From the NCBI RefSeq assembly GCF_001194135.2, contig NC_068987.1, forward strand, positions 5,320,577-5,384,576: 64,000 nucleotides of DNA. Direction: 5' to 3'. Shown here in pieces: positions 13,003 to 61,000 of this stretch; the stretch's first letter is position 1, and every line of letters starts with the position of its first letter. The position numbers and the translations under genes are program-made. This stretch comes from Octopus bimaculoides (taxonomy: Eukaryota). The notes under the pieces are model-generated. The model saw only the letters and a list, made by a program, of their open reading frames with translations. It ran no database searches and was not told where the DNA came from.

Positions 13003-13047
13003 TTATAGTTTTCCAAGTTCATCAAGATAGGCAGCAAATAGTTTGGT
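13003..13047 (-). CDS. CNDP2: CNDP2-like B exon 14 ([14 protein letters not shown])
   Basis: TTTACAG acceptor; TAA stop at 13003-13005; matches the CNDP2 C-terminal helix. Confidence 0.9.
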   Translation of the reverse strand, partial: TKLFAAYLDELGKL

Positions 13048-14523: not shown

Positions 14524-14556
<33 letters not shown>

Positions 14557-15090
14557 TACGACAGGCTTCTTTCAGTTTCCGTCTACCAAATCCACTCACA
14601 AGGCTTTGATCGGCCTAAGGCTATTATAGTAGAAGACACTTGCCCAAGGTGCCACGCAGTGAGACTGAACCCAGAACCATCTGGTTGGTAAGCAAGCTAC
14701 TTACCACACAGCCACTCCTGCGCCTATGTATGTATATATCATATCATCATCATCATTTATCGTCCGTTTCCCATACTAGTATGGGTTGGGTGGTTTGACA
14801 GAAACTGGCAAAGCCAGGAGCCACACCAGGCCCTATTGTCTGTTTTTGCATGGTTTCTATGACTGGATGCTCTTCCGGAGACGTAAGCACACCAACATCG
14901 GTTGTCAAGTGATGGTGGGGCAACAAACACAGACACACACACACATATATATACACACACAACGGGCTTCTTACAGTTTACATCTACCAAATCTACTCAC
15001 AAGGCTTTTGCCCAAGGTGCCATGCAGTGGCACTGAACCTGGAACCATGTGGTTGGTAAGCAAGCTACTTACCACACAGCCACTCCTGCG

Positions 15091-15136
<46 letters not shown>

Positions 15137-23087: not shown

Positions 23088-23119
<32 letters not shown>

Positions 23120-25916: not shown

Positions 25917-25970
<54 letters not shown>

Positions 25971-26379
25971 TAGACAGACAGACAGATAGATAGATAGACA
26001 GACAGATTGATAGACAGATAGATATACTGTCTGATCTAGGTTACATCATCCATCGTATGTTATTTATTATTTCTATACATTGGTCTGTGTCAAATCTACG
26101 AAATATAGTAACAACACAATCCATGATGCTGCACTGGAATGTTAATTTACTTACTGAAAGGTGACATTTCATTCAGCCGATACTCTTACAGTCATATTTA
26201 CCAAACTACATGCACAGCTCTATGTGTTGTCAGCTTTTCTAGATGTCTCTTCATTTGTCATTTCCAAATCAGCCAGAATCAATTCAACCAAGCATATTCG
26301 TCTGGTTACTAATCTCTACGTATCTGTTTAGTTTTTAACCAGTTCTTATCTACTATTTAAGCTTAACTCTATGAGTGTG

Positions 26380-26410
<31 letters not shown>

Positions 26411-32400: not shown

Positions 32401-33476
32401 GGATTTCTATAAAAAAACATAAATGCCTACACATGCACACACAAACTCAGTTCTATAAGTACAGATAGATATTGTCAGTGGATCACATATCCAAAAAAGA
32501 CGCACACACTAAACATTAGGGCAGTAATGTCTTTACCTGATATATGCCTCCAGCCACTGGAGTCTGTGAAGTCATTGATAAAGCTAAGCGCTTTATGGAT
32601 GCAAAACCATTGGTCACTCTATGACTGGAGATATTTAACTTCATGTAAATATATATATGTATTTATATTCTTTTATTCTTTTACTTTTTTTCAGTCATTT
32701 GACTGTGGCTGTGCTGGAGCATCACCTTGAAGGGGACCCAATGGACAACCAAGAATGTGGAAGTATGTGGGGGCAACGGAAGGCCCCTTCAGAACCCGCT
32801 TTAATAACCAAAAGTCCTCCTTCAACATCCCAGAGAGATGTAACACCACAACTCTAGCCAAGCATGTTTGGGCTTTGAAAGAAAGCACCTCCGATAATAG
32901 AAAGCAGCCACCATATTCTCTTCCATATCGGTTAACTCTGATGAGTGTAAAGTTATATAATCAGATTGTTACCTAACACTCCAATGTATTCTTTACACAA
33001 AACCAATTGGTAAGATCAGCCGTGATGAACATTTAATAGCATACATTTTGGATAATATATATCTATATCTATATCTATAATATATATATATATATATACA
33101 CACACAACGCACACACCTAAACAATAATAGGTTACACATGCTGAAAAAGGATAATTACAATTAGACATATAATTTAGGGCCATGGTAATTAGACCACACC
33201 AATTTGAAACCATTTAATTGGGCCACACCACTTTGAAACCATTAAAACGAACCTACTCTGAGCTATTCTTACTGAGTTTCATCTATTATGTATCATAATG
33301 AAATCATTTCCCCTTATTACGCAGTTAATACTGTGGTAAGAGAATACTTTTCAACCACATGCTTCTGGGTTCAATCCCACTGTATCACACCTTGGGCAAG
33401 TGTCTTCTGCTATAGACTCAGGCTGACCAAAGCCTTCTGAGAGGATCTGACAGACGGAAATTGAAAAGAAGCCCAA

Positions 33477-33513
<37 letters not shown>

Positions 33514-36500: not shown

Positions 36501-38750
36501 CTTCTCAAACTATCTGATGTGGCGTACCGCCAATTCTTAGGCGATCTTATATCGAAATTTTGCCACATAATGAATATAATAAAAGTTGACAATTTTTTAA
36601 ATCTTATATTTATCTTGTAAACAAATAATACAATATTACATAAGCAATTTATAATGTTTCTTTTCTGGAAACTCGCCGTGTACCGGCAGCTGATGGCTCG
36701 CGGACCGGCACTGGTCCGCGGACCACCACTTTGAGTAGCACCGCTCTGAGGGACCGCGGACCCCAGTTTAAGAAACACTGATTTAAAGCATCCTAGTTAT
36801 AACCATCCGATCATTTTCGTGTGGTGGGGAGTATAAGACTACATTATTTAAAGCATCTTTTTCTTTTCTTAAGATGTCGAAGTAAGATTTAAAAGTGATT
36901 TGACAGCTATTTCTAGTACTTTAAACGATAACGTAGAGGCTCATTCATTATCTGTTTAAAGTGGGTGGTACATTCCTGGAATGCGGTGAAATTATTTTAC
37001 AAATGATTTATATAAACAAATCGATTGACTGAAAATAGTGGAGCACCGGGGAAAATGCCTTATAAATTCAGTTTCGTTCCGCCGAGGTTAACTTCGAAGT
37101 ACACAAAATATCTCACGTACAATAATCTGTCTTAAATTTAGAAAAAAGGATTATTTTTATTATTTTATCATCATTTTTATTATTACTCCACTGATGTAGA
37201 CTTTGCCTTTCATCCTTTCCGGGGTTGATAAAATAAGTACCAGTCAAGTACGGGTCGATGAAATCGATTTGTCCCCGCCTCCCAAATTTCAGGTTTTGTG
37301 CCTTTAGTAGAGAGAATTATTAGGAAAATGATGAATTACACCCCCAAAATGTCCCAAAAATCGGTCAACGACCTCCAGTACAAAACAGGGACAATATGCT
37401 AGATTCAACGAATATCTACAAAACTTCTAAAGTGTCATGTTTTATTGTTTACAAAACATAATCTACAACAGCAATTAAATCAGTTTAATTAGTGTTAATA
37501 ACTGACCGTTCCTTCGTTTGCTCAAAAATTATTTGCACTAAACATGTGATGGAATCTGCAAATGTCCACCAAAATTCTAAAGTATGGTGTTTTATATAAA
37601 ACATCTTTGTTTATTGTTTATAAAATATATAATCGGTTTAGTTAATGATAACAGATTGGTTTCTTAATTTTCTCATAATTATTTATGCTACATGTGCAGT
37701 GGACTCCCCGAATGTATTACAAAAAAGTCGTGTGCTGTTTTCTATCAATGTTCCATAAAATATTCCAGGAGTTGACAAGATCTGGCCACGTAAAATAAAG
37801 AACTTGAGATAATTTAGGTGAAACAAAATTATATTTCGTCAGACTAACGATTATGAATTAAATATTTTATACCATAAAATAATAATTAACTCAGTTTAAA
37901 TCACCTTAAGAGTCAGTCATGTAAAATAACGATTTGCTTTAAAATCGGATGGGTTGCAATTAGCCGTTTTTATGAGGTCCCGTTTGGTTGTTCTAGGAAC
38001 TGGTTGTAAACATACAAATCACATAACTTTACCAAAAAGATTCTAGCTGTGAGAAATCTTCCCCATTATTTTATTATGTTTTGTATGTCCCGGTCAGAAC
38101 CTGGGTAGATTTTCTCAGATACCCATAAATACATTAGATTATAAAAGCATTAGATTAAGATTTCTTATAAATGTTTGTAATTAATTTTTATCTTGTTAAA
38201 AGAAAAAAATTCAAATATTTTTCAATGCGATATTCAAAACGAAAACATAAAACTGAAAGGAATATTAAAGTCAGAGGGCGGTTAAAAAGTCTCAATTAAA
38301 TGAATAAAGGCAGACCCTGATATAATAATGAATAGCAACTTGCTGGGACAAGGACTGACCTTGGGCCCTAAAAAACATAAACTGAAGTAACCATCAAATG
38401 GTTGCTGATATTTTAAAAATAGTAGCAGAATCTCTATCGCATTAAGAAAATAAGACCGAAGACATTGGACCATGTAGTCATGTAAACAACGTAAACCAAT
38501 AAGGGAACCCTTAAGTGGTCGCACATATAAAAATAGCAGCCAAATCTCTCTCTCACAGAAAAAGACCGGGCACATCGGACGATGTGGTCCTAAAAAAATA
38601 CAAAACGAGATGGCTATGCTGGAGAGACGTGATAGTTAAGTAAATTATAATAGATCAGAGCAGAACAAACAAAATATAATAATAACATTAGTGGTGATAG
38701 TATTAGTAGATATATAACAGCCTATAAACTTACTTGAAGACACCTTCCAT
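13003..38750 (-). CDS. CNDP2: Cytosolic non-specific dipeptidase (CNDP2-like, M20A), copy B, 14 coding exons, 469 aa
   Basis: Exons 38734-38750, 32046-32169, 30446-30616, 27891-27971, 26796-26870, 26585-26665, 25163-25236, 23550-23624, 20365-20509, 19247-19346, 18018-18189, 15611-15693, 15310-15476, 13003-13047. All introns are GT-AG with compatible phases; total 1410 nt. Motifs [51 protein letters not shown]. Confidence 0.95.
15310..15476 (-). CDS. CNDP2: CNDP2-like B exon 13 ([15 protein letters not shown]...[10 protein letters not shown])
   Basis: Conserved motifs; AG/GT boundaries; 167 nt. Confidence 0.95.
15611..15693 (-). CDS. CNDP2: CNDP2-like B exon 12 ([27 protein letters not shown])
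   Basis: 83 nt; AG/GT boundaries; phases fit. Confidence 0.92.
17740..17877. repeat. Short inverted repeat / MITE-like
   Basis: ATTGTCTCCAGCTGGCT...GTGTCCTTATAT vs ATATAAGGACAC...AGCCAGCTGGAGACAAT. Confidence 0.55.
18018..18189 (-). CDS. CNDP2: CNDP2-like B exon 11 ([25 protein letters not shown]...)
   Basis: 172 nt; conserved motif; AG/GT boundaries. Confidence 0.95.
19247..19346 (-). CDS. CNDP2: CNDP2-like B exon 10 (EDYCKDIG...[11 protein letters not shown])
   Basis: 100 nt; RWRxPSLSLHG motif. Confidence 0.93.
19656..20110. repeat. 26-bp minisatellite, ~17 units
   Basis: Unit YTTTTGTCAATTCTTTCAAWTGTCAC; period 26 nt. Confidence 0.9.
20365..20509 (-). CDS. CNDP2: CNDP2-like B exon 9 ([16 protein letters not shown]...IDFDL)
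   Basis: 145 nt; AG/GT boundaries. Confidence 0.94.
23550..23624 (-). CDS. CNDP2: CNDP2-like B exon 8 ([24 protein letters not shown])
   Basis: 75 nt; DLHSG motif. Confidence 0.94.
24279..24499. mobile_element. piggyBac-like TTAA MITE
   Basis: TTAA-CCCTTTCGTTACC ... GGTAACGAAAGGG-TTAA; partial relatives near 15970-16200 and 51620-51700. Confidence 0.8.
25163..25236 (-). CDS. CNDP2: CNDP2-like B exon 7 ([24 protein letters not shown])
   Basis: 74 nt; SDNYW motif. Confidence 0.94.
25915..26025. repeat. (GATA)n/(GA)n/(GACA)n microsatellite
   Basis: Directly visible repeats. Confidence 0.9.
26585..26665 (-). CDS. CNDP2: CNDP2-like B exon 6 ([27 protein letters not shown])
   Basis: 81 nt; catalytic/metal EE pair. 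Confidence 0.94.
26796..26870 (-). CDS. CNDP2: CNDP2-like B exon 5 ([25 protein letters not shown])
   Basis: 75 nt; AG/GT boundaries. Confidence 0.94.
27891..27971 (-). CDS. CNDP2: CNDP2-like B exon 4 ([27 protein letters not shown])
   Basis: 81 nt; GRGSTDDK motif. Confidence 0.95.
28037..28521 (+). mobile_element. tRNA-headed, hammerhead-bearing retroelement with inverted 5' arm
   Basis: 13-bp TSD AATGAAGTCATAA at 28024-28036 and 28522-28534; A/B-box head ~28245-28315; hammerhead-like motifs at 28080-28125 (-) and 28400-28445 (+, degenerate). Confidence 0.8.
28080..28125 (-). ncRNA. Minimal type I hammerhead ribozyme motif, sense to CNDP2-B pre-mRNA (intron 3)
   Basis: GACAC-CTGATGA-A-GGCTG(loop)CAGCT-GAAA-TGTT-GTGTT. 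Confidence 0.6.
28930..30150 (+). mobile_element. Decayed mariner transposase remnant with duplicated N-terminal segment
   Basis: [16 protein letters not shown] (from VTGDETW) and YDNVQPY (from HDNARPH); multiple stops and frameshifts. Confidence 0.65.
30446..30616 (-). CDS. CNDP2: CNDP2-like B exon 3 (EMEKLHIQ...[11 protein letters not shown])
   Basis: 171 nt; GHLDVQP motif. Confidence 0.95.
32046..32169 (-). CDS. CNDP2: CNDP2-like B exon 2 ([13 protein letters not shown]...EWTKA)
   Basis: 124 nt; phase-2 start; AIPSVSA motif. Confidence 0.94.
32755..32885 (+). mobile_element. Penelope-type GIY-YIG endonuclease fragment
   Basis: [21 protein letters not shown]...[14 protein letters not shown]. 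Confidence 0.7.
34966..35308. mobile_element. hAT MITE containing a 31-bp minisatellite (~7 copies)
   Basis: TIR CAGGGGTCCCCAAA / TTTGGAGATCCCCTG; perfect 8-bp TSD GTCTACAT; unit GAATCCTTGACCCCTCATCGACCCCTTCATG at 35007-35217. Confidence 0.85.
35973..36780. mobile_element. hAT (Charlie-like) MITE with a nested second hAT MITE (36496-36743)
   Basis: CAGTGGTTCTCAAAC / GTTTAAGAAACACTG; TSD ATTTAAAA/ATTTAAAG; inner TSD CCCTGGGG/CTCTGAGG. Confidence 0.75.
38734..38750 (-). CDS. CNDP2: CNDP2-like B exon 1 coding part (MEGVF K)
   Basis: TTCGCG ATG G Kozak context; GTAAGT donor; phase 2 joins exon 2 to give MEGVFKYID; a paralogous exon exists in copy A. Confidence 0.85.
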
Positions 38751-44299: not shown

Positions 44300-44350
44300 T
44301 CATTTTCCGAGTTTTCCCAGTTCATCAATGTAAGCAGCAAATAGTTTAGT
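44300..44350 (-). CDS. CNDP2: CNDP2-like A exon 14 ([16 protein letters not shown])
   Basis: TTTTGCAG acceptor; TGA stop at 44300-44302. Confidence 0.9.
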   Translation of the reverse strand, partial: TKLFAAYIDELGKLGK

Positions 44351-47300
44351 CTGCAAAAACACACAGTAAAAAAAATGAATATATATATATACACACACAC
44401 AAATATATTTACACACACACACATATATACACACACATGTATACACAGGCACACACACACATATTATTTAATAAATACAATACAGTAATGCTTCAATATT
44501 TGAGTTAATCCATTCTCGGAGTCTGCTCGTAAAGCAAAAACTCATAAAGCAGAACAATAATTTCCCATAGTAATGTTATAGATTGTAATTCATTCCTAGA
44601 AAAATATTTTACCAATAAAGTTTATAATATTCGTAAATAAATGGCAATAAAACAGTAGTAGAATGTAAAGAATATTTTATGTAAAGTAAAAAGAATGTCA
44701 AGATTATTTATAACTAGCAGAAATACCCGGCTTTGCCCGGGTTAAAGAGAATAATGAAATCTAAAAACGCCGTCTAGACTACGCAACCCTCAACTGTTAG
44801 TAGCTACGATACCATATTTCTACATTAATAACTCTCCAATCCATGCCAGCATGGAACATAGACATTAAGTGGAATGCCAGTCTCTCATCTAGGAGGGCCT
44901 TGAAATCAATGTTACCAACTGGGGACTATGTGTGCCGTAGTGATAATAAAAAGACCCAAAGGAGGTCTGCAATGAAATAATTTTACTCNNNNNNNNNNNN
45001 NNNNNNNNNNNNNNNNNNNNNNNNNNNNNNNNNNNNNNNNNNNNNNNNNNNNNNNNNNNNNNNNNNNNNNNNNNNNNNNNNNNNNNNNNNNNNNNNNNNN
45101 NNNNNNNNNNNNNNNNNNNNNNNNNNNNNNNNNNNNNNNNNNNNNNNNNNNNNNNNNNNNNNNNNNNNNNNNNNNNNNNNNNNNNNNNNNNNNNNNNNNN
45201 NNNNNNNNNNNNNNNNNNNNNNNNNNNNNNNNNNNNNNNNNNNNNNNNNNNNNNNNNNNNNNNNNNNNNNNNNNNNNNNNNNNNNNNNNNNNNNNNNNNN
45301 NNNNNNNNNNNNNNNNNNNNNNNNNNNNNNNNNNNNNNNNNNNNNNNNNNNNNNNNNNNNNNNNNNNNNNNNNNNNNNNNNNNNNNNNNNNNNNNNNNNN
45401 NNNNNNNNNNNNNNNNNNNNNNNNNNNNNNNNNNNNNNNNNNNNNNNNNNNNNNNNNNNNNNNNNNNNNNNNNNNNNNNNNNNNNNNNNNNNNNNNNNNN
45501 NNNNNNNNNNNNNNNNNNNNNNNNNNNNNNNNNNNNNNNNNNNNNNNNNNNNNNNNNNNNNNNNNNNNNNNNNNNNNNNNNNNNNNNNNNNNNNNNNNNN
45601 NNNNNNNNNNNNNNNNNNNNNNNNNNNNNNNNNNNNNNNNNNNNNNNNNNNNAATAGTTTCATTTTTAAAGTGAAAGTATTTGACATGAGTGTTTTTGTT
45701 TCACTTTTGACACGTAATACTTAAATAGTGGAGGAGATATTATGTTGCTGTGGGCTCGAACGCTGCAAGAAGTTAAAATGTTTTTTGACTAAAACACAAC
45801 TGGAACCCTAAGTAAGGCATCTGTAAAATTTGAATGAAATTGGTTGTGTAGTTCTCGAGTTTTAGGGATTCACACAGACAGACAGACAGACAGACACACA
45901 TTCTCATTTTTATATATATAGATAAAAGATATATTATTATTCTCGTATTCTGAATCACTTTCCCTCGCACTAGACTCGTGCACACCATTACTTATAGACG
46001 CGATTGCCGATTCACAAGCACTCATAGAAGGATTTGCAGATTTCTTTTTAAAAAACAAGAAGTCTAGAGTTGTTTGTTTACAAGAAGCTTTTCTTTTTTG
46101 CTCTCTATAAATTTCTCAGTAACACAGGAGCATTTCTTATGGTAGTAGAAACTTTTGCACTTCATTCAAAATTTGGATCTGGTGCTTCAAAAATAAAACT
46201 TGTAAGCCTGGGGTCTTGTAAAGCAGATCCTTGTAAAGTGAGGTATACAGTATAAATTTTACTGTATAAATTTTTAAGAGCTACCAGTAGTTTCATGCGA
46301 TGAAAACAACTCCAACAGCCATATTTTCTGTGTTAATTTAAATAACATTGGAAAGAGACAAACATGGATTGTATTAGTGAGTGACTTTATGCCAATTGTA
46401 AAAATGTAAACACACACAAAAAATACACAAATATGATTAACCTGTTAACATTTCAACAGGCCATACCTGGCCTGATTAATACCTCCACCTTACCAAAGGT
46501 GGAGGTACTGTTTTCAGTCATGTTTGTTTGTCTCTGGACAAAATATCTCAAGAACTGTTGGATTTCAGAGATGTTTGGCCTCGTGACTGGCACAAAGTGA
46601 TTAGATTTTGGGATCGATCCAGTACAGGACAAGGATTCTGGATTATTTTTCCTGTGTTTTTACTTAATTTTTGAGAGTGGTCAGGTTCATTTTTAGTATA
46701 CTCATATATGAGAGGAGTCGAGTTTATTTCAGATATTCTCATTTTAAAAATCATCTCTGGTTAATCATTGAGAGGACATTAGTGTTGCCTTGGTAGAGGT
46801 TTACGCTCTCTGAGTGCCCTTGTTCTACCTGTTTTATGCTGAAACCAGCTAGATCCGGTTTCTCGTACCTACCTTACAATGTGATTCTAAAAATAATCAC
46901 TCACATCATCAACATCTCAAAACTATGAAATAATGCATGATTAATTCAAAATAATGAATGAATAAGGATTAAGTTTGCTAGAGAAATCTGAATGTTAGAA
47001 GGTTAGACAATTAAGTCAAACAATTTGTAGAATTCTTACCCCGTCAATGAATTTACAGATGTCAAGTTTCTCATTCTGGGAATGTAGATCATCGTCACAA
47101 GCCCCCATGGGTAGTAGCACGATATTTTTGCTTGTTGCTTTCTCGAAAAAGAAGGCTAATGGAACACTACCGCCTTCACGAGTCATGTCAGGTTCAACAC
47201 CATACACTGGCAGAAAGCAAAACACACATTAGACTTTAGTCACAGAAAAATTCTCGAAGTCACTTTAATAAGCTTTCCTTTTTCTTTCACATTTTCAAAT

Positions 47301-50300
47301 ATCAATATGGTGATGATGATGATGATGTCGATGATTGCTCTGCGAGGCAGACCATTGTGTGTGTGTGTGTCATCATCATCATCATCATCATCATCATCGT
47401 TTAACATCCGCTTTCCATGCTAGCATGGGTTGGACGATTTGACTGAGGACTGGTGAAACCGGATGGCAACACCAGGCTCCAATCTGATTTGGCAGAGTTT
47501 CTACAGCTGGATGTCCTTCCTAACGCTAACCACTCAGAGAGTGTAGTGGGTGCCTTCACATGTCACCTGCACGAAGGCCAGTCAGACGGTACTGGCAGTG
47601 TGTATATATACATGCCAGTGGCACGTAATAAGCACCATTTGAGCGTGGCCGTTGCCAGGCTCGCCTGACTGGCTCCTGTGCCAGTGACATGTAAAAAGCA
47701 CCCACTACACTCTTGGAGAGGTTGACATTAGGAAGTGCATCCAGCTGCAGAAACTCTACCAGATCAGATGGGAGCCTGGTGCAGTCACTGGCTCTCCAGA
47801 CCTCGGTCAAACCATCCAACCCATGCCAGCATGGAAAGCGGACGTTAAACGATGAAAATGATGATGATGATGATACAGGGTATTGGGTCATCCCATAAAT
47901 AATGTGTTTTTTTTATACTGCATTTCAAAATTAAGACAAACGAAGTTTTTTTTTAATCTAGATACATTTAGAATTCAACTCATCCACGATGTTCTCATAT
48001 CTACGATCTGAGGAGTTTGTTTACTCTTTTACACATCTCTATGTATTAAACAATTGTATTATTCTTTTCTGCTCTAGACACAATGGCAGCAATTATGGGG
48101 GAGGGGGGCAGTCGATTACATTTACCCCAGTATGCAACTGGTACTTAATTTATCGACCTCGAGAGAATGAAAGGCAAAGTCGACCTTGGTGGAATTTGAA
48201 CTCAGCATGTAACAATAGACGAAATACCACTAAACATTCCTTCCAACATGCTAACAATTCTGCTAGTTTGCCACCCCTACTAAATACACATATTGATATA
48301 AAATGTATTGATATATAATAATTTGCAATGTTAAAATTGATAAATCTACTTATAGAAGATTACACAACCGCTGAGTCATATAGAAATCACATGACAATAA
48401 TAAACCTGTATTCACCTCCCATATCTACTGATTCTAAACCAGCACTTCTTAAACTTTTGTCATTCATGACCCCATTTTTCACCATGCGAAATTTCATGAT
48501 CTCAAGTATTAAAAATGAAATAAAACATACAAATAAATACATAAATCATTTATTTTTTTGCTGAACAAGATACATAAAAAGTAAAGTAGTTATATTATTT
48601 GTCAAAATAAAAATAGTTTTAGGATTTGTGTGTTTGTGGTATAACATACAAACTGAAATTCAAGTGTTGAATTTAATTTTCACGACCCCAGCATTTCGTT
48701 TTCCGACCCCATTTGGGGTTATGACCCATAGTTTAAGAAGCACTGATCTATACAAATATCTATGCCTCTGCTTACCTTTTTTACAAGCCTTTTTAGCAGC
48801 AGCATAATTCTCGTGTTTATAATCACTGATCCAAGGAGGGCTACCTGTTGTGGTTATCCTGTGAAGTAAAAGAAAAAACACATTCCTTATAGATGGGGAC
48901 TTACAAAACTTAAGGGTCCTTTTTTAGTTTCCTTCTTTTGGGGATTTTACTTTTATGATTTATCCTCGACTTGTAGCCACGCTGGAGCTTCAACTGGAAT
49001 GAAACTGATGCATTGGACAGGAATCAAACCCAGATCAACTGCTTGGAAGACCACAATGCTAATCATTACACCACCAATGTCTTATAAAGTATTAGTCAAG
49101 TACTGAGGTTACTGATTCGACTAAATATTCTGCAACATTTCTGTGTCTCATAAAGCAGAGATGATTCATTAAATATGTTACTCAACTTCAACTGATTCTT
49201 CACATCTAGTACTTAAATAAATAAGAAGTTGACCAAAATATAGTTTAACCATTTAGTATTTAAATCCACCATATCAGACCCAAATACTCTACCTGTTTTA
49301 ATGTTCAAACTGACCAAATCCAACCTCTTGCACCAACCCCACAACATCATTCTTAAAAATAAACAATCACACCATTAAATTATTGATGGTACAAAGTAAT
49401 GCATGATTAATAAATAAATATAATAAATGAATAAAATAAATAAGCATTACATTTGATAGAGTAATCTGAATGCTAAAAGATTAAACTACAAAGTCTCAGA
49501 TTAGATAATAATATCTTGTGCCTTTGCATCTGTAAGGGCACAAGCTTACAGGTTAAAGACTTGAAGTACGAAAAGATAAAGAAGAAGTTGTTATGATGAT
49601 GAAGTTCTCCTAATAACAAATGGGAAAAACTTACCGAAGTTTGTTGGGGGAGCCTCTTGTCTTGTAGCAATTCTCCAAATAAGATTTGGTCAATCGTTGC
49701 ACTTCATCAGGAGTCTGGTTTGGCACTATACGAATGGAGAACTTTCCAGTCACTTTTCTGGGAATAACAGTCTTTGCGCCAGGTTCACTGAAAGCCCCTT
49801 CAATACCTAAGGAAAAAAACAAAACAAAACAAGAAACAAGAGGAGGGTGTAAAGCGAATATACTTGACTGATACTTTGTTTTATCAGCCCTGAAATGATA
49901 AAAGGCAAAGATAACCTTAGTCGAATTTGAACTCAGAATCTAAAGAGCTGGAAGAAAGAGCTGCAAAGCATTTTGTCTGATACGGTAACAATTCTGCCAC
50001 CTCATTGATTTTCTTTCTAATATAGGCACAAGGCCTGAAATTTGAGTGGGGGGGTTGATTATATGAAGCCTGATACTTGACTAGTACTTTATTTTATTGA
50101 CCCAGGAGGGGAGACAGGTTAAGCTGACCTTGGCAGAATTTGAACACAAACCTCAAATGAGCTGGAAGAAATAATGCTCCGTATCTTGCCTGACACACCA
50201 AGATTCTGCTCGCTCAATGTATTTTATTCCTTTCTTCTACATTAATACCACCGTTCCTTCCTTTATTTCAGAGACATTCTTGAATAAATTAAAACATGAT

Positions 50301-53300
50301 ATGAAGTGGAAGTGATTTACCATGAAGAGAAAGACAAGGGTGTCGCCAATTATGCTGCAGAAGTTCAACCTTTGACGAATGTAGAAGTTTTTCACAGCCT
50401 ATATCTTTCCGGCAGTCTTCCTATACAAATATCAAACCAGAGAGAAACACAAATAAATGTCTACATACATATATAAAGTGGATGAGAGAGGTAAAACTTA
50501 GTTCAGCACATTAATTCTTTCATGAACTAAAATGCCATTCAGTTCTATATTTAAGAGATGAGGAATTATGTACATTATTTACATTTGATGGATGTTTGTC
50601 TTCATCTTGTTTCTTGTTAACACGTTTCGGCTGATATACCCTCCAGTCTTCATCAGGTGTCTTGGGGAAATTTCGAACCTGGGTTCTCATTCTTAAGGTA
50701 TTTTTCGATGTTGTTGTTGTTGTTATCATTATTATTATTATTATTATTATTGTTATTATTATTATTATTCAGTAGTTTTATTTTTATAACGTGCTTTCAC
50801 TTCACTACCGGGCACAGCTCTGTGTGCCTTGGGTATGTGCTGTGGTTTGCTGTGATGCTCTTATGGTTACTGTATTGAAAGTGTTTTGCGTAGGATGTGT
50901 GCAGTGCCCAGTAGTGCAATTTTCTGTATGTTATATATATTTGTAAGTCCTGGTGTTTTTGTTATGTATTTGTCTGAATATTTTTTTATTATATCTAAGG
51001 CACCTACTATGATAGGAATTGTTTCTGTTTTTAGATTCCACAACTTTCTCTCATTCTTACTTCCTATTTCTGTAATTCGAAGGGGCCAGCCTTGTCACAC
51101 TGTGTCACGCCGAATCTCCCTGAGAACTACGTTAAGGGTACACGTGTCTGTGGGGTGCTCAGCCACTTGCACGTTAATTTCACGAGCAGGCTGTTCCGTT
51201 GATCGGATCAACTGGAACCCTCGACGTCATAAGCGACGGAGTGCCAACAACAACAAGGAGAAAAAATAAACATCATGGAACTTACCAAATCAAAATCAAT
51301 ATCCTGATATAAAGAATTTTCTTCCGAAGTGAGTGGTTCCACAGAATCATAAATTCCTGGAATCAGGATATGACCTTTGACATCAACCAAAGAATTCATC
51401 AAAAATATAAGGTCGCTCATTGCTTCATGACTGAAAAAAACCCCAAACAACCCCAAAAACAATAAAAATAAAAAAGTAACTTGAAATATTACTTTTTAGG
51501 CTATTTTTGTTTAGACATGCAACTGATTTTTATGTGGAATGTCATAGCAATATATCAGCATTAAGAATTAAATTAGTGTTGCTGGCTGAAGAGGTTAGCA
51601 TGCCAGGCAAAATGCTCAACCCTTTCGTTATTGTATTTATTTTGAGATGCTCTGGGTTTCTTTCAATTAATTTTAAATATAACAAAGAATTTAGTAAAAT
51701 AACCAAAGTGACGGCACAAAGCGTTGAGGAAAGAGTGTTACATTGATGATCATAAGAACAAGGTTTCGATTCCTGGACTGAGTAGTGTGTTGTGTAATTG
51801 AGCAAAACATTTCATGTTATTCCAGTCCACTCCCCTGTAAATGAGAATGATGTCTTGCAATGGAATGGTGTCCTGTCCAGAAGGAATGTCACCATCCATT
51901 ACCATGGAAACTTGGTAACTTGGCTCTTTGAGTTCTGGGACTTGAGACAGTAATTATCAGGAAATGACAGTGATGATGATGATGAAAGTTTTAAAAAATG
52001 CCATATTATCTATGTTGGTGAAGAGATACCAAATAATAATAAAATAAACAATTGAAACACAGAAGTACTTACACAGAACCACCAAACACACCGGAATGTA
52101 AATCTTTAGACGAACATTCTACTTCAACGTAGAAGTGACAAACTCCACTGAAAGAGATTAGAAATTTTATATAATCATGTACTCAATATATGTGTATAGA
52201 GACAATTTAGATGCAGGTGTGTTCATGGCCGTTGCCAGTGTCACTTGACTGACTCCCATGCCAGTGGCACATAAAAGGTACCATTTGAGCATGGTTGATG
52301 CCAGTGCCACCTGACTGGCTCCTGTGCGGTGGCACGTAAAAAGCACCCACTACACTCTTGGAGTGGTTGGCGTTAGGAAGGGCATCCAACTGTAGAAATC
52401 TTGCCAGATCAGATTGGAGCCTGGTGCAGCCATCCAGTTCACCAGTCCTCAGTCAAACCATCCAACCCATGCTGGCATGGAAAACAGACATTAAACGATG
52501 ATGATGATGATGGTTTTCTATGACAGGATGCCCTCATTGTTGCCAACCTTCATCTGTTTCCAAACAAAGTAATATTCTATTATTAGAATATTCCTTGATT
52601 AAGAAACATCTAAAAACTTAATTTATTGAAGATCTATTGGGTGGTGCATCATTATTGCGGCTTTTTTTCAACAAAAACAATAACAACATGTAACATAAAC
52701 ATCTTTAAATGATTATTCCGGAGCATATTCACCATCTACTTCAATTACTGCTTCCCATTTGCTTGGCAGATGGTGAGAATGTCATTTAAAGATGTTTTTT
52801 GTTAAATATTGTTATTGTTTTTGTTGAATAAAATTTGTTGTAAAAAAGCTGCAATAATTATGCACCAACCCAACATTAACCCACATAAGCCCATAAAAAA
52901 TGTTCACTGTATTTAGATTAAACGTTATGGTAAGCTTTCACAATCTGGAAGAGAAGGACAGTATGCAACTGCTAGCTATGGGTGTCGACTACCTACTGAG
53001 CATTTCGTATGGTCAGTCAGATGCTTCCGGATGAGTTCAGGTCCAAACAAGTAGGAGCAGGTTTTGTGTTGTGAAAACGCAACCAGGGGTAGATATGGGC
53101 TAATGGTTTGATCTATCATTGATTTATTTCCATGTTATGAATGAAATCAATAACTGATTATAGATTGTCTACTCTATCTAATCAAAATGATTTTTAATAA
53201 TTAATTGGTGCTCCTTTGGCATGTGATCTACAAGGGATTTTGCTTTAAATGAATTTTTAGTTTACTTTTCAATTTCTAAAACCCCGTTAGGTGTTGGCTA

Positions 53301-55063
53301 AAGATTTTTACAATGTGACCAGTGACGAGATGAAGGCAGTTTCATTTTTACAAGAACCCAGCACTAAATTTAATCTTTATATCCTAGTTAACATGGAGGT
53401 CTTTTTAGAATACCAAGCACTACATTATTAGCCATGTTAAGTTGGATATAAAGATTACCATTTTGTACTGATACTGCTTCCATTATTAATAATTAATTTT
53501 TAAAAAGCCAGCCAGTTATTTGCAACATCAGTGTCAGAAAAGTTCTGATATTCAATATATTGTAGCAGCAAGGTTTAATGAGCTTGCAGTCACTTGGATG
53601 CTTCCTACTGATCAGTTCCTGTAGACTGAAATCATTTGATATGGGAATTCTGGTGCCCATGACAGATGAATTTCATTTGCTATGATCTCTGTGTGCCCTT
53701 TTATGCATGAAGCGCCCATATGAGAGGAACTCTCAAGGTTAAGAAAACATCCGTTTTAAGTTGGATATAAAGATTATAGTGGTGAAGAGCACGGGCTACT
53801 AACCCCAAGATTCTGAGTTCGATTCCAGGCAGTGACTTGAATGATAAATACCTTAGGAATGAGAACCCAGGTTTGAAATTTCCCCAAGACACCTGATGAA
53901 AGCTGGAGGGTATATCAGCCGAAATGTTGTGTTAACAACAAACAAGATGAGGACAAATATCCATTGAATGTAAATAATTTCTAATTTTGTTAATCACAAA
54001 TAAGTAAATCTTACCAGTTAAGATTACATAATTAGTCACCCACCTTCACCTTCCCCTTCCAAATACTTCCTCCTGGTAGCAGCAGCTTTTTCCCTTTCTT
54101 TTTCCCCTGTTCTTAAATGTCTCTCAAGTTTCATGGCAACTTCACTAGTGCTGGTGACATGTAAAATGCACTCAGTGTTCTCTATGAAGTGGTGGGCATT
54201 AGGAAGGGCATCAAGCTGTAGAAACTACCAAAGCAGATACTGGAATCGGATGCAGCTTACCAGTTCCCTGTCAAATTGTGGAACCGATGCCAGCATGGAA
54301 TATGGATGTTAAATGATGACGAGTAATAAACAGGACTCATTAATCATTCTTACCGAAGTCCGTAAGTCAAGCAAGGTCTATTCTTGCTAAGCCAGGAATT
54401 GTCCGAGATGCAGACAAAATCAATATCCTACAAATGAAAAGAAACACATTAAAAATATGGAAAGAAAAATATTGAAGACTGAGCTTGTTTTTCTTGGTTG
54501 TTCTATGGAATTGATATATAATATATGTTTATATATATTTGGAGGAGAAAATTTTTCTCAAAGAGTTAAGATCAAGAAAAGAACCTTTTTAGAAAGTAGA
54601 AAGACACTAAGCCAAAACACATTTCTTGAAATCTCTTCCCAAAGATTAGTGTCTTTCTACTTTCTAAAAAAAAAAGGTTCTTTTCTTGACCTTAACCCTT
54701 TGAGAAAAAATCTTCTCTCCAAATATTATAACTGTATCAAGGAATTTCCAAAACACTCCAAATATATATATATATTTCGTTTTTGGATTTGGTTTGCAAG
54801 ATTCTTTGTGTGAGCTTGTGTGTTGAAACATATTCTGTTGTGTTTGGGGAGTCATACATACATACATGCATGCATGTATAGGCACACATACACACAGAGT
54901 CAAAACTATTGAAAAGGTTGCAAGACGCAATGAAAATTTTAGGAAAATAAAAATAAGAAATAAGTGGAAATTTTACCGGTGAGTGTGTTAAATTATAAGG
55001 CACACAAAGAGAATGACTCTCCCCAGACACAACAGTATATATATGTATAAATTAATACACACT

Positions 55064-55110
<47 letters not shown>

Positions 55111-57978
55111 ATGTATAAATTAATACATATATTTTATGAAACCAGAACAGAAAGCCATAAGAAATATCACTAAGCATTTTGTCCGAAGCAGTAATGTTTC
55201 TGCCAGCTGACCACCCTAAATGGACGTAGTAATAAAAATATGCATTAGAGATAATTCTCAATATTTTTTTAATTAATTATTTTGGTAGTAGGTTATAAGG
55301 AGACTTTAAAAACCTGCTTGGAAACCTGCAAGAGAAACCTGACTACATGGCAATCAGAAACACTAAATAGAGTCGAGAGGGCAAAGCCGTCTCCGACTTT
55401 GAAGCAGCCAGGATCACTAATCTAAAGCGGAAAAGAGCCCCACATGATGGAGACCAATACTGCAATGCCTAATGTAAAATGTTGAATGATAAACCTCGGT
55501 AGACACAAAGAGGAAGACATAAGTTGAAAAGTGCTGATAAAGCAAACTGCAAAGAGGAATCGAAAATGGTGTTACCTTCAAAAAAGAATCCTTCTTTGAC
55601 ATCAACAGGTTTGCAAGACCATCAGAACCAGATTCTTCCATGGCTTCAAACACAAACTGGAAACAAACAAAAAAAGTATTAAGAATGATGTGTAGCTTAT
55701 TTGTGATATCAGGATGGCTTAAATTGAATTGATAAATTTGAAATATCTTTGTAACGATGAAATATGCCTGTAAAGATGGTATATCTTTTAATGACTGTTA
55801 TTTAATATATTTTATTGGATAGGTCTGGAAGGACTCAAAACCAACAAAATCCAAGCAGTAGAGGCCACTACAGTAAGAGCAGAAAACACAGAGAGAAGAA
55901 ACATGTCAATGGGTCAGAAATAAGAGTGAACTGGTGTGTAACTTTATGCCAACTAGTCTCATAAATAAATCTTTCACTAACACATTTTGGGTCTCCATTA
56001 ATTATTTTGTGTATAGCTTAACTAAATCTATAATCTATCAATTTGAAAGCTCATTCATTATCAGCCATGAAAAGAAACACAAGTACACAGTAATCTCATC
56101 GCTTTATATAAAAATGGATTACAGTTTAATCTTATCTGATATAATTCTTATCAATAACAGACAGAAAATATGAAAGTGAATTAAAGGATGAGATAACATC
56201 TTATGTCTTACTTTTAAATTGACAGGAATGTCAATTTTCTGGTTTTGATATGCTTCAACAGCATTCAGCCAACCAAGAACTGGTCCCTGAAATTACAAAG
56301 AAATAACAATCGTACTGAAGTATGGTAAATATCCAGAAATATGAAAGAATGAAATATAGGGTATGTGAAGAACTTGAGGATATATTTGGTAATTTAATAA
56401 AACATCTGTAATCTAGCAAAAGCCAAATGTATTTTAGTAAAAATTTATGCTCGTGTTTTTGATAAGCTTCCTTATAAGATTATTTTAAGATGACAACTTC
56501 TAAATCATTGTTTTCTGCACAAACGGCAACAAAAACTACATGCATTTCTTTTCATTTCTTATGTTAGCATTTTATTGGCTAAGAAAGAAATATCTGAAAG
56601 AAATATAAAATTTTAACTGGTTTGAAGAGAATTGGTTTAATTGGTGTGAAATGTCCTCAAATAGTCCTTGTACCCTGTAGTTCCATGTTCAATTCCATGG
56701 GGCAAATATCATCTGCCATTGACTTGGGGCATTGTCACCATCATTACCATCTTTATTGTTGTTGCCATGATCATTGTCAACATGAAACATGAATGTTTTT
56801 AAATGATGATATATATAAATATATACATAGCGAGATCGTTGCCAGTGCCCCTGGACTGGCTCTTGTGCTGGTGGCACATAAAATACACCATTTTGAGCAT
56901 GCCCGTTGCCAGAATCGCCTGACTGGCCTTCGTGCCGGTGACACGTAAAAGCACCTACTACACTCTCAGAGTGGTTGGCGTTAGGAAGGGCATCCAGCTG
57001 TAGAAATTCTGCCAAATCAGATTGGAGCCTGGTGTAGCCTTCGGGTTCCACCAGTCCTCAGTCAAATCGTCCAACCCATGCTAGCATGGAAAGCGGACGT
57101 TAAACAATAATGATGATGATGATGATGATATATATCTATATGCATATAACATTCTATAACATAGACTAGAAAGAATTTAGCAATATACTTACTTAGAACC
57201 AAAGTACCCTGATATTAAGGCAGCTTACCTTATCGTCAGAAGCTCCTCTCCCATATAACTTGCCATCAATTTCTGTTAAAACAAATGGCTCTGTATCCCA
57301 GCCATCAGACTAATAAAGAGAAAAGAAATTACAAATTTAATAATTATTTAATTTCAAACAATGAAGTCATAAGTTAAACAGTGAAGATTTATTGCATCAC
57401 TGAAACCCTATCCTTTAATAATGATAATAGTAACAATAATCATAATTACAACAACAATGACAATAATAAATTCTTACATTTTAAGTATAGTAGCTCTATC
57501 TATTCTCCAGAATAACAACAGACCAGGACCTGAAGATTAAATAGATTAAAGGATTGACAAAGATATGATTAATCTTCTGAATTTAGTAAATGATACCAGA
57601 TAGGAAAAAGATCTTCTGTAGTGAAACAACTATTTAGGGCTAAAATAATTCTTAGAAAAGAGAAAACCCTCTTGATATAGATTTGGCAATTCTATTTTCC
57701 CTCAAATGTGTCGTTGAAACAGAAGCACTTCCTTCATCAAAGAGATAGAGAGGGATAGATAAAAGTACTTTATGTGTGCATGCATGTGTATGTGTGCGCA
57801 TGCACGTGCACGTGCATGCACATGCACGTGCATGTCTGTGTGTGTGTGTGTGAGAGAGATATATGTTTATGTTAGGGTTTGTTCCCCCACTTGAGAACTG
57901 GTGTTGGTTTGTTTACGTCCCTGTAACTTAGTAGTTCAGCAAAAGAAACCAATAAAATAAGTACTGATGGAGGAAGAA

Positions 57979-58010
<32 letters not shown>

Positions 58011-61000
58011 CAAAGAAGAAGAAGAAGAAGAAGAAGACAAAGAAGAAGAAGAAGAAGAAGAAGTAGTAGTAGTAGTAGTAGAAGAAGAAGAAGAAGAAGA
58101 AGAGGAAGAGGAAGAAGACGTAGTAGTAGTAGAAGAAGAAGAAGAAATAAAAATAAAAATATAAAAAAGGTATTTTCCACCCACCTTATCCGCTGGTTGA
58201 ACATCAACATGTCCATACGCTAGCAAGGTTTTCTTTTTAGGATCCTTACCAAGTTGTCCAAAAATCACAGGAGGAAGTTTAAGGACTTCTGAGGATGGGT
58301 AGACTTGATCTCCAAGTTCCAGTAATTCAGTTTGAATATGAAGTTTCTCCATTTCCTTTCAAATAAAATATAACACAACATCATTATATTAAAACATGTT
58401 TATGGTTGGAAAATATCGAGAAGTACGATTGTTAGATCTTACAATTTACAGTATGTCTCCAAGGTGGGTGAAAAGTAAGTAGGGATTAAAAATTGGTAAT
58501 AAAAGCCAAATTCCTTTCACAAATTAACTGAAACAAATGATACATGTTCTTTGTTACATGGGAAAATGAAAGTAAGCTAACCACCTACACTTTAAAAAAA
58601 AGTGGGGGAGTTTAGCTCAATCGGTCAGAGCATCGTGACGCATAATCAAGGAGATTTGAGTTCGAGTCTCATAGCTAACCACCTACACTTTTTTCTGCAA
58701 AATAGGGGTAGTTTATCCTGTTCAGGCTATATTATTAGCATTATCCTGCGATTGAGAATTTAAAATCACTTCTTTAGCTTTCTAAATCTTCATATTTCAA
58801 CATAAGCACTGGTGGCATCAACCAGTTTCCTCAAAAACGGCCAGGGATGGAGTGAACAACCTTCTGAAGGATGTTGTCTGGGATATCATTGAAAATCTCC
58901 TGAATCCGTGTTTCCAAGTCCTCTAGCATGTGAAGTTTTGTCTTGTACACCTCTTTTCCTTTCCACCCACCATGTATGTACTTGTGTGGCGACAAACACA
59001 CACTTTTCTAACAAGAGGGAAGTGAGGAGCACTTCCCTCTTCCCATTGTCAAATGTGATGCTTATATAATTCATATCGTTTTTAATTATTCATTTTCTTG
59101 TGGTTTCAAGATTTTTACGATGTTGTTCTACTTCTTTATTACTTGTATGTCATGTAACTGCAGCCATGCTAGAGCACCACCTTAAAGGGTGTTAGTTGAA
59201 GAAATCGATCCCAGGACTTATTCTTTGTAAGCCTAGTACTTATTCTGTCAGTCTCTTTTTGCTGAACCACTACGTTACGGGGATATAAACTCACCAGCAT
59301 CGGTTGTCAAGCGATGGCAAGGGTGGAAGGTGGGGGTAACAAACACAGACACACAAGCATATACCTATATATATATATATATATATATNNNNNNNNNNNN
59401 NNNNNNNNNNNNNNNNNNNNNNNNNNNNNNNNNNNNNNNNNNATAGTTTGTGGATTTGCTTCCCACACTCAACACACAAAAGTATGAAAATGTAAAGATA
59501 TATCTTTTTTTCCATCTCTGCTGAAATTCAACTTTAAAATGTTTTTAATTATGCTAATTCATTTCTAAAGTCTTGAATCGAAACAGATATCTAGTTTTGT
59601 AATTAATAAATAATTACTAATTTAATTACCTCTATTTTCTTATTTTCTTAAAAATATATATAAACCCTGGTTTATCCAATTACCCTACAGTTGAATATTA
59701 AATGTAATATTCAGCGGGACTGAACCAAAAACCACATGGTTGGGGAGCAAGCTTTTCAACCACACAGTCATGACTGTTCAGCCTAAATAACACTAAAAAT
59801 GATAAAAAAGTAATATAAATTTATTTAAAATAACTTCTCTTACAGCTTTTGTCCATTCAACCATTCTTCTAACTTCTGGCCTCAGTTTCACAGATGCTGA
59901 CACACTAGGAATGGCCACAGCAATACCAAGCCGTTTAATAAAACGGTCAGCATTATCATCGATGTACCTGAACAAGAAATGAAACAATAATCTTTGTAAT
60001 ATCGATAATCTATACAAGTTACGTGTGCTTGTGTATGTATATACATATATGTATGTGTAAAATGAAACAGTGAAGAAATTCCAAGAGTCAATTATATTAA
60101 AAACAAACAAGAAAATGCACAGAAATCTTTATGATTAAAATGTAGAGTTCATATATCCAACCGGTTTCAAATTTTTAATGATAATCATGATTTGTAATTA
60201 AATGATCTGGTAATATTATTACTAGATGTTGCTGGTTATAACAGAGGCAATATCAAATAACTGCTGTTAACAATAACAGAGAGGTAATAATGGAAATACT
60301 TAATTTTCATTCTTAATAATAAAAATGGTTTCAAATTTTTGCAGATTGGAGCCTGGTACAGCCTTCTGGCTTGCCAGTCCTCAGCCAAACCGTCCAAACC
60401 ATGCCAGCATGGAAAGCGGACGTTAAACGACGACGACGATTACGATGATGATGATGATGATGTTATATATATATATAAATATATATAACAGAATTGAAGT
60501 CACATCACGTCCGATGACGTAATGGTACATGCTCAAGGCTGGTTTGCTATCTGAAATTCCAACTTGAGCTGCAACTAAAAGCATGGATGTCATAGCTATC
60601 AAATGACAATTGGCTATAAAGCAGTTTGTCAAGAGAGTATGTGCATGCATATTTAAATACATCCTTCATTCATGTGATCCCCTCCCCCTCTCTCTCACAA
60701 AGACACACACACACACATACATACGAGGGTGTGCTGAAAAGTTCTTGGCTGTGAGTAAAAGAAAATACAGGAGGATCAGTTAATTATGATTTCATTCAAC
60801 ATATTCCCCCTCTCAGATTCACACACCTGTTGCAACGGGCCTTCAGTTTTTCTAAGACCTGTAAAAGAACTTGGAAGGTTGGGCCTCCAACCAAGTCTTT
60901 CTCTTAAGCCAGGGACGTTTCAGCACCCAGTCGTATATTAATCAAGGTGGGCTATCTTTCGTCTTGACTCGAAAAATCATAACAAAGAACTCGGTAATTT

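Follow-up and report, generated by a model that had tools for sequence, protein, structure and literature searches.

Does a tandem duplicate of a housekeeping dipeptidase, changed around its active site at positions that are nearly invariant among animals, prefer other substrates than its sister gene, or has it simply been relieved of constraint? This question is raised by a locus of Octopus bimaculoides, studied here in a window of 64,000 nucleotides (NCBI RefSeq assembly GCF_001194135.2, contig NC_068987.1, positions 5,320,577 to 5,384,576 of the forward strand; all positions below are counted from the first letter of this window). The window is AT-rich and repeat-rich and contains two intact tandem genes for CNDP2-type M20 dipeptidases, both on the minus strand. 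Copy A (44300..63428; 14 exons, 471 amino acids; RefSeq XP_014789613.1) is a CNDP2-like M20 dipeptidase paralogue. Copy B (13003..38750; 14 exons, 469 amino acids; RefSeq XP_014789504.1), downstream of A on the same strand, is the canonical CNDP2 orthologue, and is both our comparator and the gene-conversion partner of A.

CNDP2 is a widely conserved housekeeping enzyme that takes part in Cys-Gly and glutathione turnover, cleaves many dipeptides and synthesizes the exercise signal Lac-Phe in mammals. To our knowledge, the residues that set its substrate preference are known mainly from one vertebrate comparison, that of CN1 with CN2. An earlier examination of the letters alone (hereafter the sequence-only reading) had described A as a neofunctionalised dipeptidase whose substitutions cluster beside metal ligands and pocket residues. 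The analysis reported here suggests that A is probably a functional cytosolic two-metal dipeptidase or amidase, with a pocket remodelled above all on its S1 side and kept distinct from that of B.

Copy A is changed at positions that are nearly invariant among metazoan homologues

We aligned A with human CNDP2 (4RUH) and mouse CN2 (2ZOF), which sets the numbering used below (position in A plus 3 up to residue 375, and plus 4 thereafter). In this numbering A carries the changes Y197S, G200S, Y215H, R308N, S313C, I418V, V420L, T421A, L422F, T423F, G443D and A444L. When 116 other metazoan homologues were aligned with the two copies, B proved to have the consensus residue at the following sites and A did not. 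The consensus is found in all 116 homologues at Y197 and G200 (Ser or Asn in the A-type proteins), I418 (Val), A444 (Leu or Pro) and N455 (Lys), and in 115 of them at Y215 (His) and R308 (Asn or Cys). It is only slightly less frequent at T421 (113; Ala or Val), G443 (112; Asp), L422 (111; Phe or Asn), S313 (110; Cys) and T423 (105; Phe, Tyr or Ile). At positions 197, 200, 215, 308, 418, 422, 423, 443, 444 and 455 the state of A occurs in none of the 116 homologues. The residues of A are not, as could have been the case, common among invertebrate CNDP2s; they are absent from the 114–116 other metazoan homologues compared.

The changed motifs lie where the sequence-only reading had placed them, all 10 of the peptides that it quoted being present on the minus strand. 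SDNSWLS (54386-54406; B counterpart 25195-25215) has its first pocket replacement at codon 54395-54397, which encodes S194 of A, the equivalent of Tyr197, two residues past the ligand Asp195. HNWRHPC is encoded at 50334-50354 (B, 19260-19280), ITTTGSPP at 48834-48857 (B, 15669-15692), and an 11-residue stretch with the changes at 418 and 420–423 at 47145-47177 (B, 15415-15447). DDDLH (47082-47096; B, 15352-15366) contains D439 and L440 of A at 47085-47090, the equivalents of Gly443 and Ala444, directly before the ligand His445. The canonical pocket signature, a 24-residue string followed by Phe or Leu together with DDGAH, does not vary among the homologues sampled and is found in B; A has a different 25-residue string and DDDLH. 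The interval given for these changes, 47040-54427, was rightly located and covers exons 7–13 of A only, the whole gene running from 63428 to 44300.

To place these changes on a common scale, we used the 174 alignment columns that are at least 95% conserved among 114 non-cephalopod homologues. Of these columns, 17, 18 and 17 are changed in the three A orthologues (O. bimaculoides, O. sinensis and Argonauta hians, see below), and 5, 4 and 5 in the three B orthologues. The deviations of B are all common to A with one exception, G169, which O. bimaculoides A retains. In P0004 and P0005, transcriptome contigs that probably come from decapodiform cephalopods and are the closest sequences from outside the octopods, 1 of the 174 columns deviates. 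When a column was called A-specific if changed in at least two of the three A orthologues and of consensus type in all B, 13 such columns were obtained (100, 197, 200, 203, 215, 308, 418, 421, 422, 432, 443, 444 and 455), and no B-specific ones. Unique replacements relative to the outgroup number 36–41 in A and 10–15 in B (Tajima-type test, p = 1e-4 to 2e-3). As had been proposed, it is A that is derived, and B has kept the canonical state.

The affected sites include Tyr197 of the S1 pocket, the contact residue Ile418 and neighbours of the ligands H99, D195 and H445. Bestatin binds to CN2 with its S1 group clamped by Y197, a residue that is Leu in CN1 (PMC11626516); reported contact residues include Y197, I213, G416, S417, I418 and P419 (PMC12655758). 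Along the primary sequence, a metal or catalytic residue is at most two positions away from 4 of the 13 A-specific sites, compared with 14 of the 154 other conserved sites (p = 0.037). When published contact residues are counted along with the ligands, 9 of the 13 are at most three positions away from one of them (p = 0.025). The clustering near ligands and pocket residues seen by the sequence-only reading therefore holds modestly, as measured along the chain.

Two further positions deserve mention. A 16-residue stretch had been listed as specific to A; it does contain changes at 378 and 382, and its loss of His380, a reported ligand contact encoded in exon 12 and conserved in 97 of 116 homologues, is common to both octopod copies (Thr, Ser or Asn in A; Gly, Ser and Ser in B). 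His380 is also replaced, by Cys, in one of the two transcripts that represent the nearest outgroup. As it is lost in B too, even the 'canonical' octopod B pocket is slightly unusual. At the otherwise conserved Gly169, adjoining the catalytic E166 and the ligand E167, octopod copies have Asp (EESDS). The sole exception is residue 166 of O. bimaculoides A (human G169; exon 6, 55576-55656), a Gly that looks like a reversion to the metazoan consensus.

The catalytic core and the fold of CNDP2 are retained

M20 dipeptidases are dimers in which residues of the lid complete the active site of the partner subunit, and a hallmark of the CNDP2 type is Mn2+-dependent hydrolysis of many dipeptides (Cys-Gly and others) with inhibition by bestatin. 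We observed that in all A orthologues H99, D101, Q103, D132, D133, E166, E167, D195, L210, H228, V231, T330, R343, E414, G415, G416, S417, P419 and H445 are unchanged. This set comprises the five metal ligands H99, D132, E167, D195 and H445 (ligand list from PMC6271292), the catalytic E166 and D101, and the D132-D133 pair. It also comprises the anchors of the substrate backbone and carboxylate, namely H228 and T330 from the partner subunit, R343 and G415-G416-S417, whose roles are taken from PMC11626516 and PMC12655758.

These residues are spread over most of the gene. Exon 3 (58185..58355, minus strand as all exons of A; 96% identical to B) encodes H99 and D101 with the change L100V between them, exon 4 (57229..57309) the bridging ligand D132 with D133, and exon 6 (55576..55656) E166 and E167. 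The carboxylate anchors T330 and R343 are conserved in exon 11 (49635..49806). The claim that all metal and catalytic residues remain, with no stop codons, was borne out in all three A orthologues.

A matches the Pfam families Peptidase_M20 (PF01546; 118 bits, cut-off 24.6) and M20_dimer (PF07687; 41 bits, cut-off 21), and B gives similar scores. M20_dimer, the lid domain, spans residues 205-362 and includes R308N and S313C. An AlphaFold2 model of A from a 50-sequence alignment had a mean pLDDT (predicted local distance difference test) of 89.3 and a predicted template modelling (TM) score of 0.89. Foldseek matched this model to 2ZOF (mouse CN2), 4RUH and 4G1P with TM-scores of 0.93, 0.89 and 0.92, respectively. 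Residues 415-424 form a helix that starts right after the equivalent of the backbone-binding Ser417. The sole segment with pLDDT below 50 is 438-440 (D-D-L; 47085-47093), directly preceding His441 (human His445); this is the site where A replaces the invariant Gly-Ala.

From residue 2 onwards the N-terminus of A (15 residues were read directly) is collinear with B and CNDP2, without a hydrophobic leader. A resembles the CNDP2/CN2/Dug1 enzymes of MEROPS family M20 (2ZOF, 4RUH, 4G1P) in sequence (58% identity to mouse CN2), domain architecture, metal ligands, E166 and D101, H228, T330, R343 and the leaderless start. B is an orthodox orthologue of this group and A a tandem duplicate of B. What sets A apart is the replacement of the near-invariant Y197, G200, Y215, R308, I418, T421, L422, G443, A444 and N455, and also of S313 and T423. 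Human and mouse CNDP2 and yeast Dug1, unlike A, retain SDNYWLG, HRWRYPS, DDGAH and the canonical EGGSIP(V/I)TLTF stretch.

The pair is shared by Octopus and Argonauta

We found both types of protein in two further species: in O. sinensis P0001 (A type; 92% identity across the aligned query) and the canonical P0125 (B type), and in Argonauta hians P0024 (A type) and P0003 (B type). A lies directly upstream of B on the same strand in all three species, and the six coding sequences are all intact. Since the pair occurs in the same order in O. sinensis and Argonauta hians, it is old. The immediate upstream neighbour of A in Argonauta, a gene on the other strand (L002:6872-7816), encodes an RNA_pol_Rpc34 domain.

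The deposited model of Argonauta A (GAB1599913.1, 445 amino acids) skips exon 8 and is thus incomplete. The exon is intact in the assembly GCA_054771915.1 (L002:37937-38011), with AG and GT splice sites; it encodes 25 residues, reads GICHFF and onwards, and so carries His215 (CHF) as well.

An O. vulgaris protein, P0002 (CAI9725218.1), combines exons of the A type in its 5' part (SDNNWLS, CHF) with exons of the B type in its 3' part (HRWRHPS, DDGAH). That P0002 is a B gene converted by A over exons 2–8 was considered and rejected; canonical B copies exist in O. sinensis (P0125) and in O. vulgaris (P0126). It is best read as a chimeric gene model, that is, an annotation artefact, the alternative being a transcript that reads through from A to B. 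A protein search with the A-specific C-terminal 190 amino acids returned only short canonical fragments of at most 63% identity and no further A orthologues. Logan transcriptome members in the 90% clusters numbered zero for A and B alike, and a literature search for octopus or cephalopod CNDP2 paralogues found no paper.

In the tree, A nests with B inside the octopod clade, and the closest non-octopod sequences fall outside. The residues G56, G169D, Q425E and Y456F are derived in both A and B and absent from the nearest outgroups; so is G164A, except in O. sinensis B. Because these shared derived residues include Q425E and Y456F in exon 13, which is unconverted (see below), the duplication is placed within the octopod lineage. 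It would have taken place after octopods split from the closest non-octopod relatives that the database contains, probably decapodiform cephalopods, and before the split of Octopus and Argonauta.

Gene conversion homogenises much of the pair and leaves the pocket exons diverged

In a general evolutionary pattern, concerted evolution homogenises tandem paralogues only in part and leaves selected 'islands of divergence'. The A–B pair shows signs of this pattern at three levels. At the level of whole genes, the within-species synonymous divergence (dS) between A and B is 0.30 in Octopus and 0.60 in Argonauta, far below the orthologue dS between the genera (about 1 or more, saturated). At the level of regional trees, A groups with B by lineage in exons 1–9 with 67–100% bootstrap support (50% for Octopus A+B in exon 9), and in exons 10–14 the clade of Argonauta A+B receives 0–0.5% and that of the A orthologues 39–55%. 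At the level of exons, A–B identity is 89–96% in exons 2–6, 87–90% in exon 9 and 89–92% in exon 11, and falls to 80–88% in exon 7, 79–82% in exon 10, 71–73% in exon 12 and 76–77% in exon 13. The two Argonauta copies have 99% identity in exons 3 and 9, and 62–74% in exons 10–14.

A recent event is directly visible. Exon 8 (52073..52147; Y215H and the lid residue H228) and about 375 bp of intron 8 lie in a tract of 482 bp (51698-52168) that is 96% identical to B at 23164-23645, and 150 bp of it (52136-51987) are identical between the copies. Exon 8 of A differs from that of B only at the synonymous position 52144 and in the His/Tyr215 codon (CAC versus TAC, at 52137), which sits at the 5' edge of the tract.

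The diverged exons 7, 10, 12 and 13 carry most of the pocket changes. Exon 7 (54354..54427) encodes the ligand D195, Y197S, G200S and K203R and is an island of divergence, 80% identical to B with its flanks and 88% on its own. Exon 10 (50321..50420), a second island, carries Y287C, R308N and S313C. Exon 12 (48776..48858; B counterpart 15611-15693), which carries ITTTGSPP, is the most diverged. Exon 13 (47040..47206) carries I418V, V420L, T421A, L422F and T423F in its 11-residue stretch, and G443D and A444L in DDDLH.

Conversion thus keeps large parts of the two copies alike, with exons 7, 10, 12 and 13 as the exceptions. That the diverged exons are those with the pocket changes is expected if selection removes conversion events that overwrite pocket codons of A, and we infer that it may do so; a chance arrangement of the conversion tracts could also give this distribution. 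The locus shares with the general pattern its sharp-edged tracts, its neighbouring exons at 71–82% identity and the switch of the tree from lineage to paralogue. The comparison is with a pattern rather than a family, and at this locus the islands are the exons with enzyme pocket residues.

Copy A evolved faster and remains under purifying selection

Between O. bimaculoides and O. sinensis, the ratio of nonsynonymous to synonymous divergence (dN/dS, or omega) of A is 0.37–0.39, below 1 at p = 7e-5, and that of B is 0.15–0.19 (pN/pS, 0.39 for A and 0.16 for B; Fisher test of the difference, p = 0.015). A ratio near 1 would have marked a decaying copy; with this ratio and with intact orthologues in O. 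sinensis and Argonauta, A is not decaying.

We fitted codon models (GY94/F3x4, in a codon-likelihood program of our own) to codons 282-472, the region least affected by conversion, on the paralogue tree. A single omega was estimated at 0.096. Allowing the A clade its own value gave 0.179, with 0.057 for the rest (twice the log-likelihood difference, 2ΔlnL = 26.1, p = 3e-7). When the A clade was split further, the stem had an omega of about 5–11, ill-defined on a very short branch, the crown 0.139 and the background 0.055 (2ΔlnL = 9.3, p = 0.002). These results show a burst of amino acid change in A after the duplication, followed by renewed but weaker purifying selection; adaptive change is not proven by them.

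The same codon is found in all three A orthologues for Y215H (CAC), S313C (TGT) and M306Q (CAG), and E302V is encoded by synonymous Val codons (GTT/GTA). These four changes probably arose on the A stem.

Copy A and vertebrate CN1 have changed at the same positions

CN1, the serum carnosinase or beta-Ala-His dipeptidase, is another CNDP2-like duplicate, of independent origin and narrowed specificity. Human CN1 (3DLJ) reads SDNLWIS, HLWRYPS, IPIAKMF and DDGEH where CNDP2 reads SDNYWLG, HRWRYPS, IPVTLTF and DDGAH. We compared the majority residue of 81 vertebrate CN1 sequences with the CNDP2 consensus over the 174 conserved columns and found a difference at 26 of them. Seven of the 13 A-specific sites (100, 197, 200, 308, 421, 422 and 444) are among these CN1-divergent columns (odds ratio 8.7, Fisher p = 7e-4). 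Y215 is variable in CN1 as well. The replacement itself is identical only for L100V, G200S and T421A; at 197 A has Ser or Asn and CN1 Leu, at 308 Asn or Cys and CN1 Leu, and at 444 Leu or Pro and CN1 Glu.

The two duplicates differ in other respects too. A keeps, among others, E414, G416, S417, D133 and L210, all of which are altered in CN1, and CN1 is secreted whereas the N-terminus of A is leaderless like that of B. The idea that A could be an orthologue of CN1 was rejected; A nests among octopod sequences, shares derived residues with B and lacks a leader. Evidence for carnosine as a substrate of A was not found in this sequence analysis. Change at the same invariant positions in two independent duplicates is the best available argument that these positions tune substrate preference, and the sites shared by A and CN1 are likely to be specificity-determining.

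Gene models and repeats of the locus

Gene models were obtained by filtered tblastx and protein-guided splicing, with the best database relatives as guides. The predicted A and B proteins are identical to the RefSeq models, both of which are named 'cytosolic non-specific dipeptidase'. In both spliced models the introns are all GT-AG, there are no internal stop codons and the open reading frame (ORF) is intact. The two proteins are 83.8% identical, with 76 differences, 31 of which fall in the final 98 residues. Exons 1–13 have the same lengths in A and B, and exon 14 has 51 nt in A and 45 nt in B. The exons of A that were not described above are exon 1 (63412..63428; start codon, METVFK with its last codon split), exon 2 (59844..59967; converted, 96% nucleotide identity to B exon 2), exons 5 (56212..56286) and 9 (51286..51430), both taken from the spliced model, and exon 14 (44300..44350; with the stop codon).

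A 119-bp block found upstream of A (61977-61859) and of B (34593-34475) was considered as exon 1 and rejected as a SINE-like (short interspersed nuclear element) repeat; the true exon 1 was found by a pattern search. The SINE-like repeat is present in seven copies of 79–90% identity (61820-61990, 34425-34593, 37187-37265, 48110-48228, 16428-16609, 5280-5377 and 468-572), and those upstream of exon 2 in A and B look like a conserved exon. ARAGORN and Rfam gave no match for this repeat, and tRNA and Rfam scans of the whole window gave nothing.

A palindromic interspersed repeat resembling a MITE (miniature inverted-repeat transposable element) occurs in both orientations at no fewer than 17 loci, most of them intronic in A or B (for example 47380-47900, 52257-52512, 56871-57130, 20765-20910, 22756-23091, 13931-14171 and 10102-10325). 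It yields spurious conserved 'ORFs', one of them recognized by a 12-residue string. Runs of N of 10–914 bases, 2154 N in total (for example 38963-39876, 44989-45652, 43975-44074 and 62078-62270), sit in the A–B intergenic region, the last intron of A and intron 1 of A, and leave the coding exons unaffected.

Discussion

The results fit best, and in our judgement with fair probability, with A being a functional, octopod-specific tandem paralogue of CNDP2 (M20) beside a B that stays canonical. A has retained the complete two-metal machinery and the anchors of the substrate backbone and carboxylate, and has replaced a shell of otherwise invariant residues around the pocket: Tyr197 (by Ser or Asn), Gly200, Tyr215, Arg308, Ser313, the helix past Ser417 (418, 421-423) and neighbours of His99 and His445. 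Such an enzyme would most likely still be a metal-dependent dipeptidase or amidase, with a changed side-chain preference, chiefly for the N-terminal (S1) residue. Conversion repeatedly homogenises the two copies over much of their length; what stays different is exons 7, 10, 12 and 13 and, where the exon 8 tract ends, the codon for His215. The persistence of the A-type exons and of His215 despite conversion suggests that selection keeps the A-type pocket.

An altered substrate preference appears the best reading of A, in partial support of the sequence-only reading. Some of its details fared less well. Of the term 'neofunctionalised', the raised omega of the A lineage was confirmed, and positive selection on the stem was not (see below). 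The new Asp (G443D), which it had linked to basic substrates, is present in Octopus A and absent from Argonauta A, and hence does not characterise the A clade as a whole. Its proposals of opines and arginine metabolism, metal switching and N-lactoyl-amino-acid synthesis found no link to A in our analysis, and no contradiction either.

The most serious competing explanation, which we hold unlikely though well worth keeping in mind, is relaxed constraint without a new function. Here A would be partly redundant, its pocket drifting while fold and core are weakly selected, and its changes would amount to lost fine-tuning; A might, for example, provide the same dipeptidase activity at a low level or in certain tissues only. 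Several observations speak for this and weigh against a newly fixed specificity. The test of a stem omega above 1 was not significant (p = 0.42), nor was the branch-site test on the A stem (2ΔlnL = 1.82, p ~0.09), and the null optimisation looked poorly conditioned. Branch estimates are rough in any case, with the Octopus–Argonauta dS saturated (at least 1) and gene conversion breaking the assumption of a single tree. The omega of A is 2–3 times that of B. Within the A clade, positions 197, 200, 308, 382, 422, 423 and 444 were hit repeatedly, and the three A orthologues have different residues at A-specific and neighbouring sites (S/N/N at 197, N/N/C at 308, A/V/T at 421, F/F/N at 422, F/Y/I at 423 and L/P/P at 444). 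For codons 400-456, pN/pS between the A copies of O. bimaculoides and O. sinensis is 0.54, indistinguishable from 1. Given these repeated hits and this ratio, relaxed constraint fits as well as a fixed new specificity does. The low model confidence at 438-440, before H445, points the same way. On the other hand, the ORF and all splice sites of A are intact in three species across saturated synonymous divergence, the crown omega is 0.14, and the roughly 20 catalytic, metal and anchor residues are all unchanged. Y215H and S313C are fixed in all A orthologues, and at 197, 200, 308 and 444 there has been no return to the consensus. Conversion homogenises the neighbouring exons, but the divergent ones resist it, and the overlap with the CN1 sites is not expected from random drift.

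Two other explanations carry much less weight. A could lack catalysis and act as a pseudoenzyme, as a binding protein or, in heterodimers with B, as a modulator of B. The dimerisation domain contains R308N and S313C, the tandem genes could be co-expressed, and O. vulgaris P0002 joins exons of both; yet that protein is most simply an annotation artefact, the analysis gave no evidence of heterodimers, and all metal ligands and the catalytic Glu and Asp, residues that pseudoenzymes usually lose, are conserved in every A orthologue, which makes this role very improbable. Hardly to be credited, finally, is that Octopus and Argonauta duplicated the gene independently and recently, with convergent residues in A, or that the pair is an artefact of assembly. 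In nucleotide trees of the whole gene and of its 5' region, the A and B of one lineage do cluster together (100% bootstrap), and the within-species dS values (0.30 and 0.60) are far below the orthologue dS of about 1. For Argonauta, however, this grouping is lost in exons 10–14, where a clade of A orthologues appears. All A copies share the derived codons CAC (His215), TGT (Cys313) and CAG (Gln306), the order of A upstream of B is conserved, and conversion tracts with sharp edges are directly visible within exons. An assembly artefact is excluded by the 16% protein divergence, the differing introns and the recovery of the pair from three assemblies.

A stronger version of the preferred reading, namely a remodelled but working dipeptidase, can also be stated. 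Octopods may have independently evolved a second, specialised CNDP enzyme, functionally analogous to the CN1/CN2 split, whose remodelled S1 pocket would take a narrow or new class of substrates, such as unusual N-terminal residues or non-standard dipeptides, or which might work in the reverse, condensing direction. Its pocket codons would be protected from conversion by selection, and the seven sites shared with CN1 would form a specificity switch of the family. On the present comparisons we regard this version as doubtful.

Both genes were already annotated, under the same generic name and undistinguished, and such divergence of paralogues is common. The gene-conversion mosaic and the parallel with CN1 are additions to what the letters of the window had suggested. 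We see in A and B a solid case of divergence between enzyme paralogues rather than a categorically new system, the function of A being predicted from sequence. The locus is also a clean case of exon-scale islands of divergence within an otherwise conversion-homogenised gene pair. For cephalopods, A would be a lineage-specific metabolic enzyme, so far unstudied. For the CNDP2 family, an old and still constrained octopod duplicate that is altered at the same invariant positions as CN1 is a natural second experiment, and it offers 100, 197, 200, 215, 308, 421-423 and 444 as a candidate set of the sites that may determine substrate preference.

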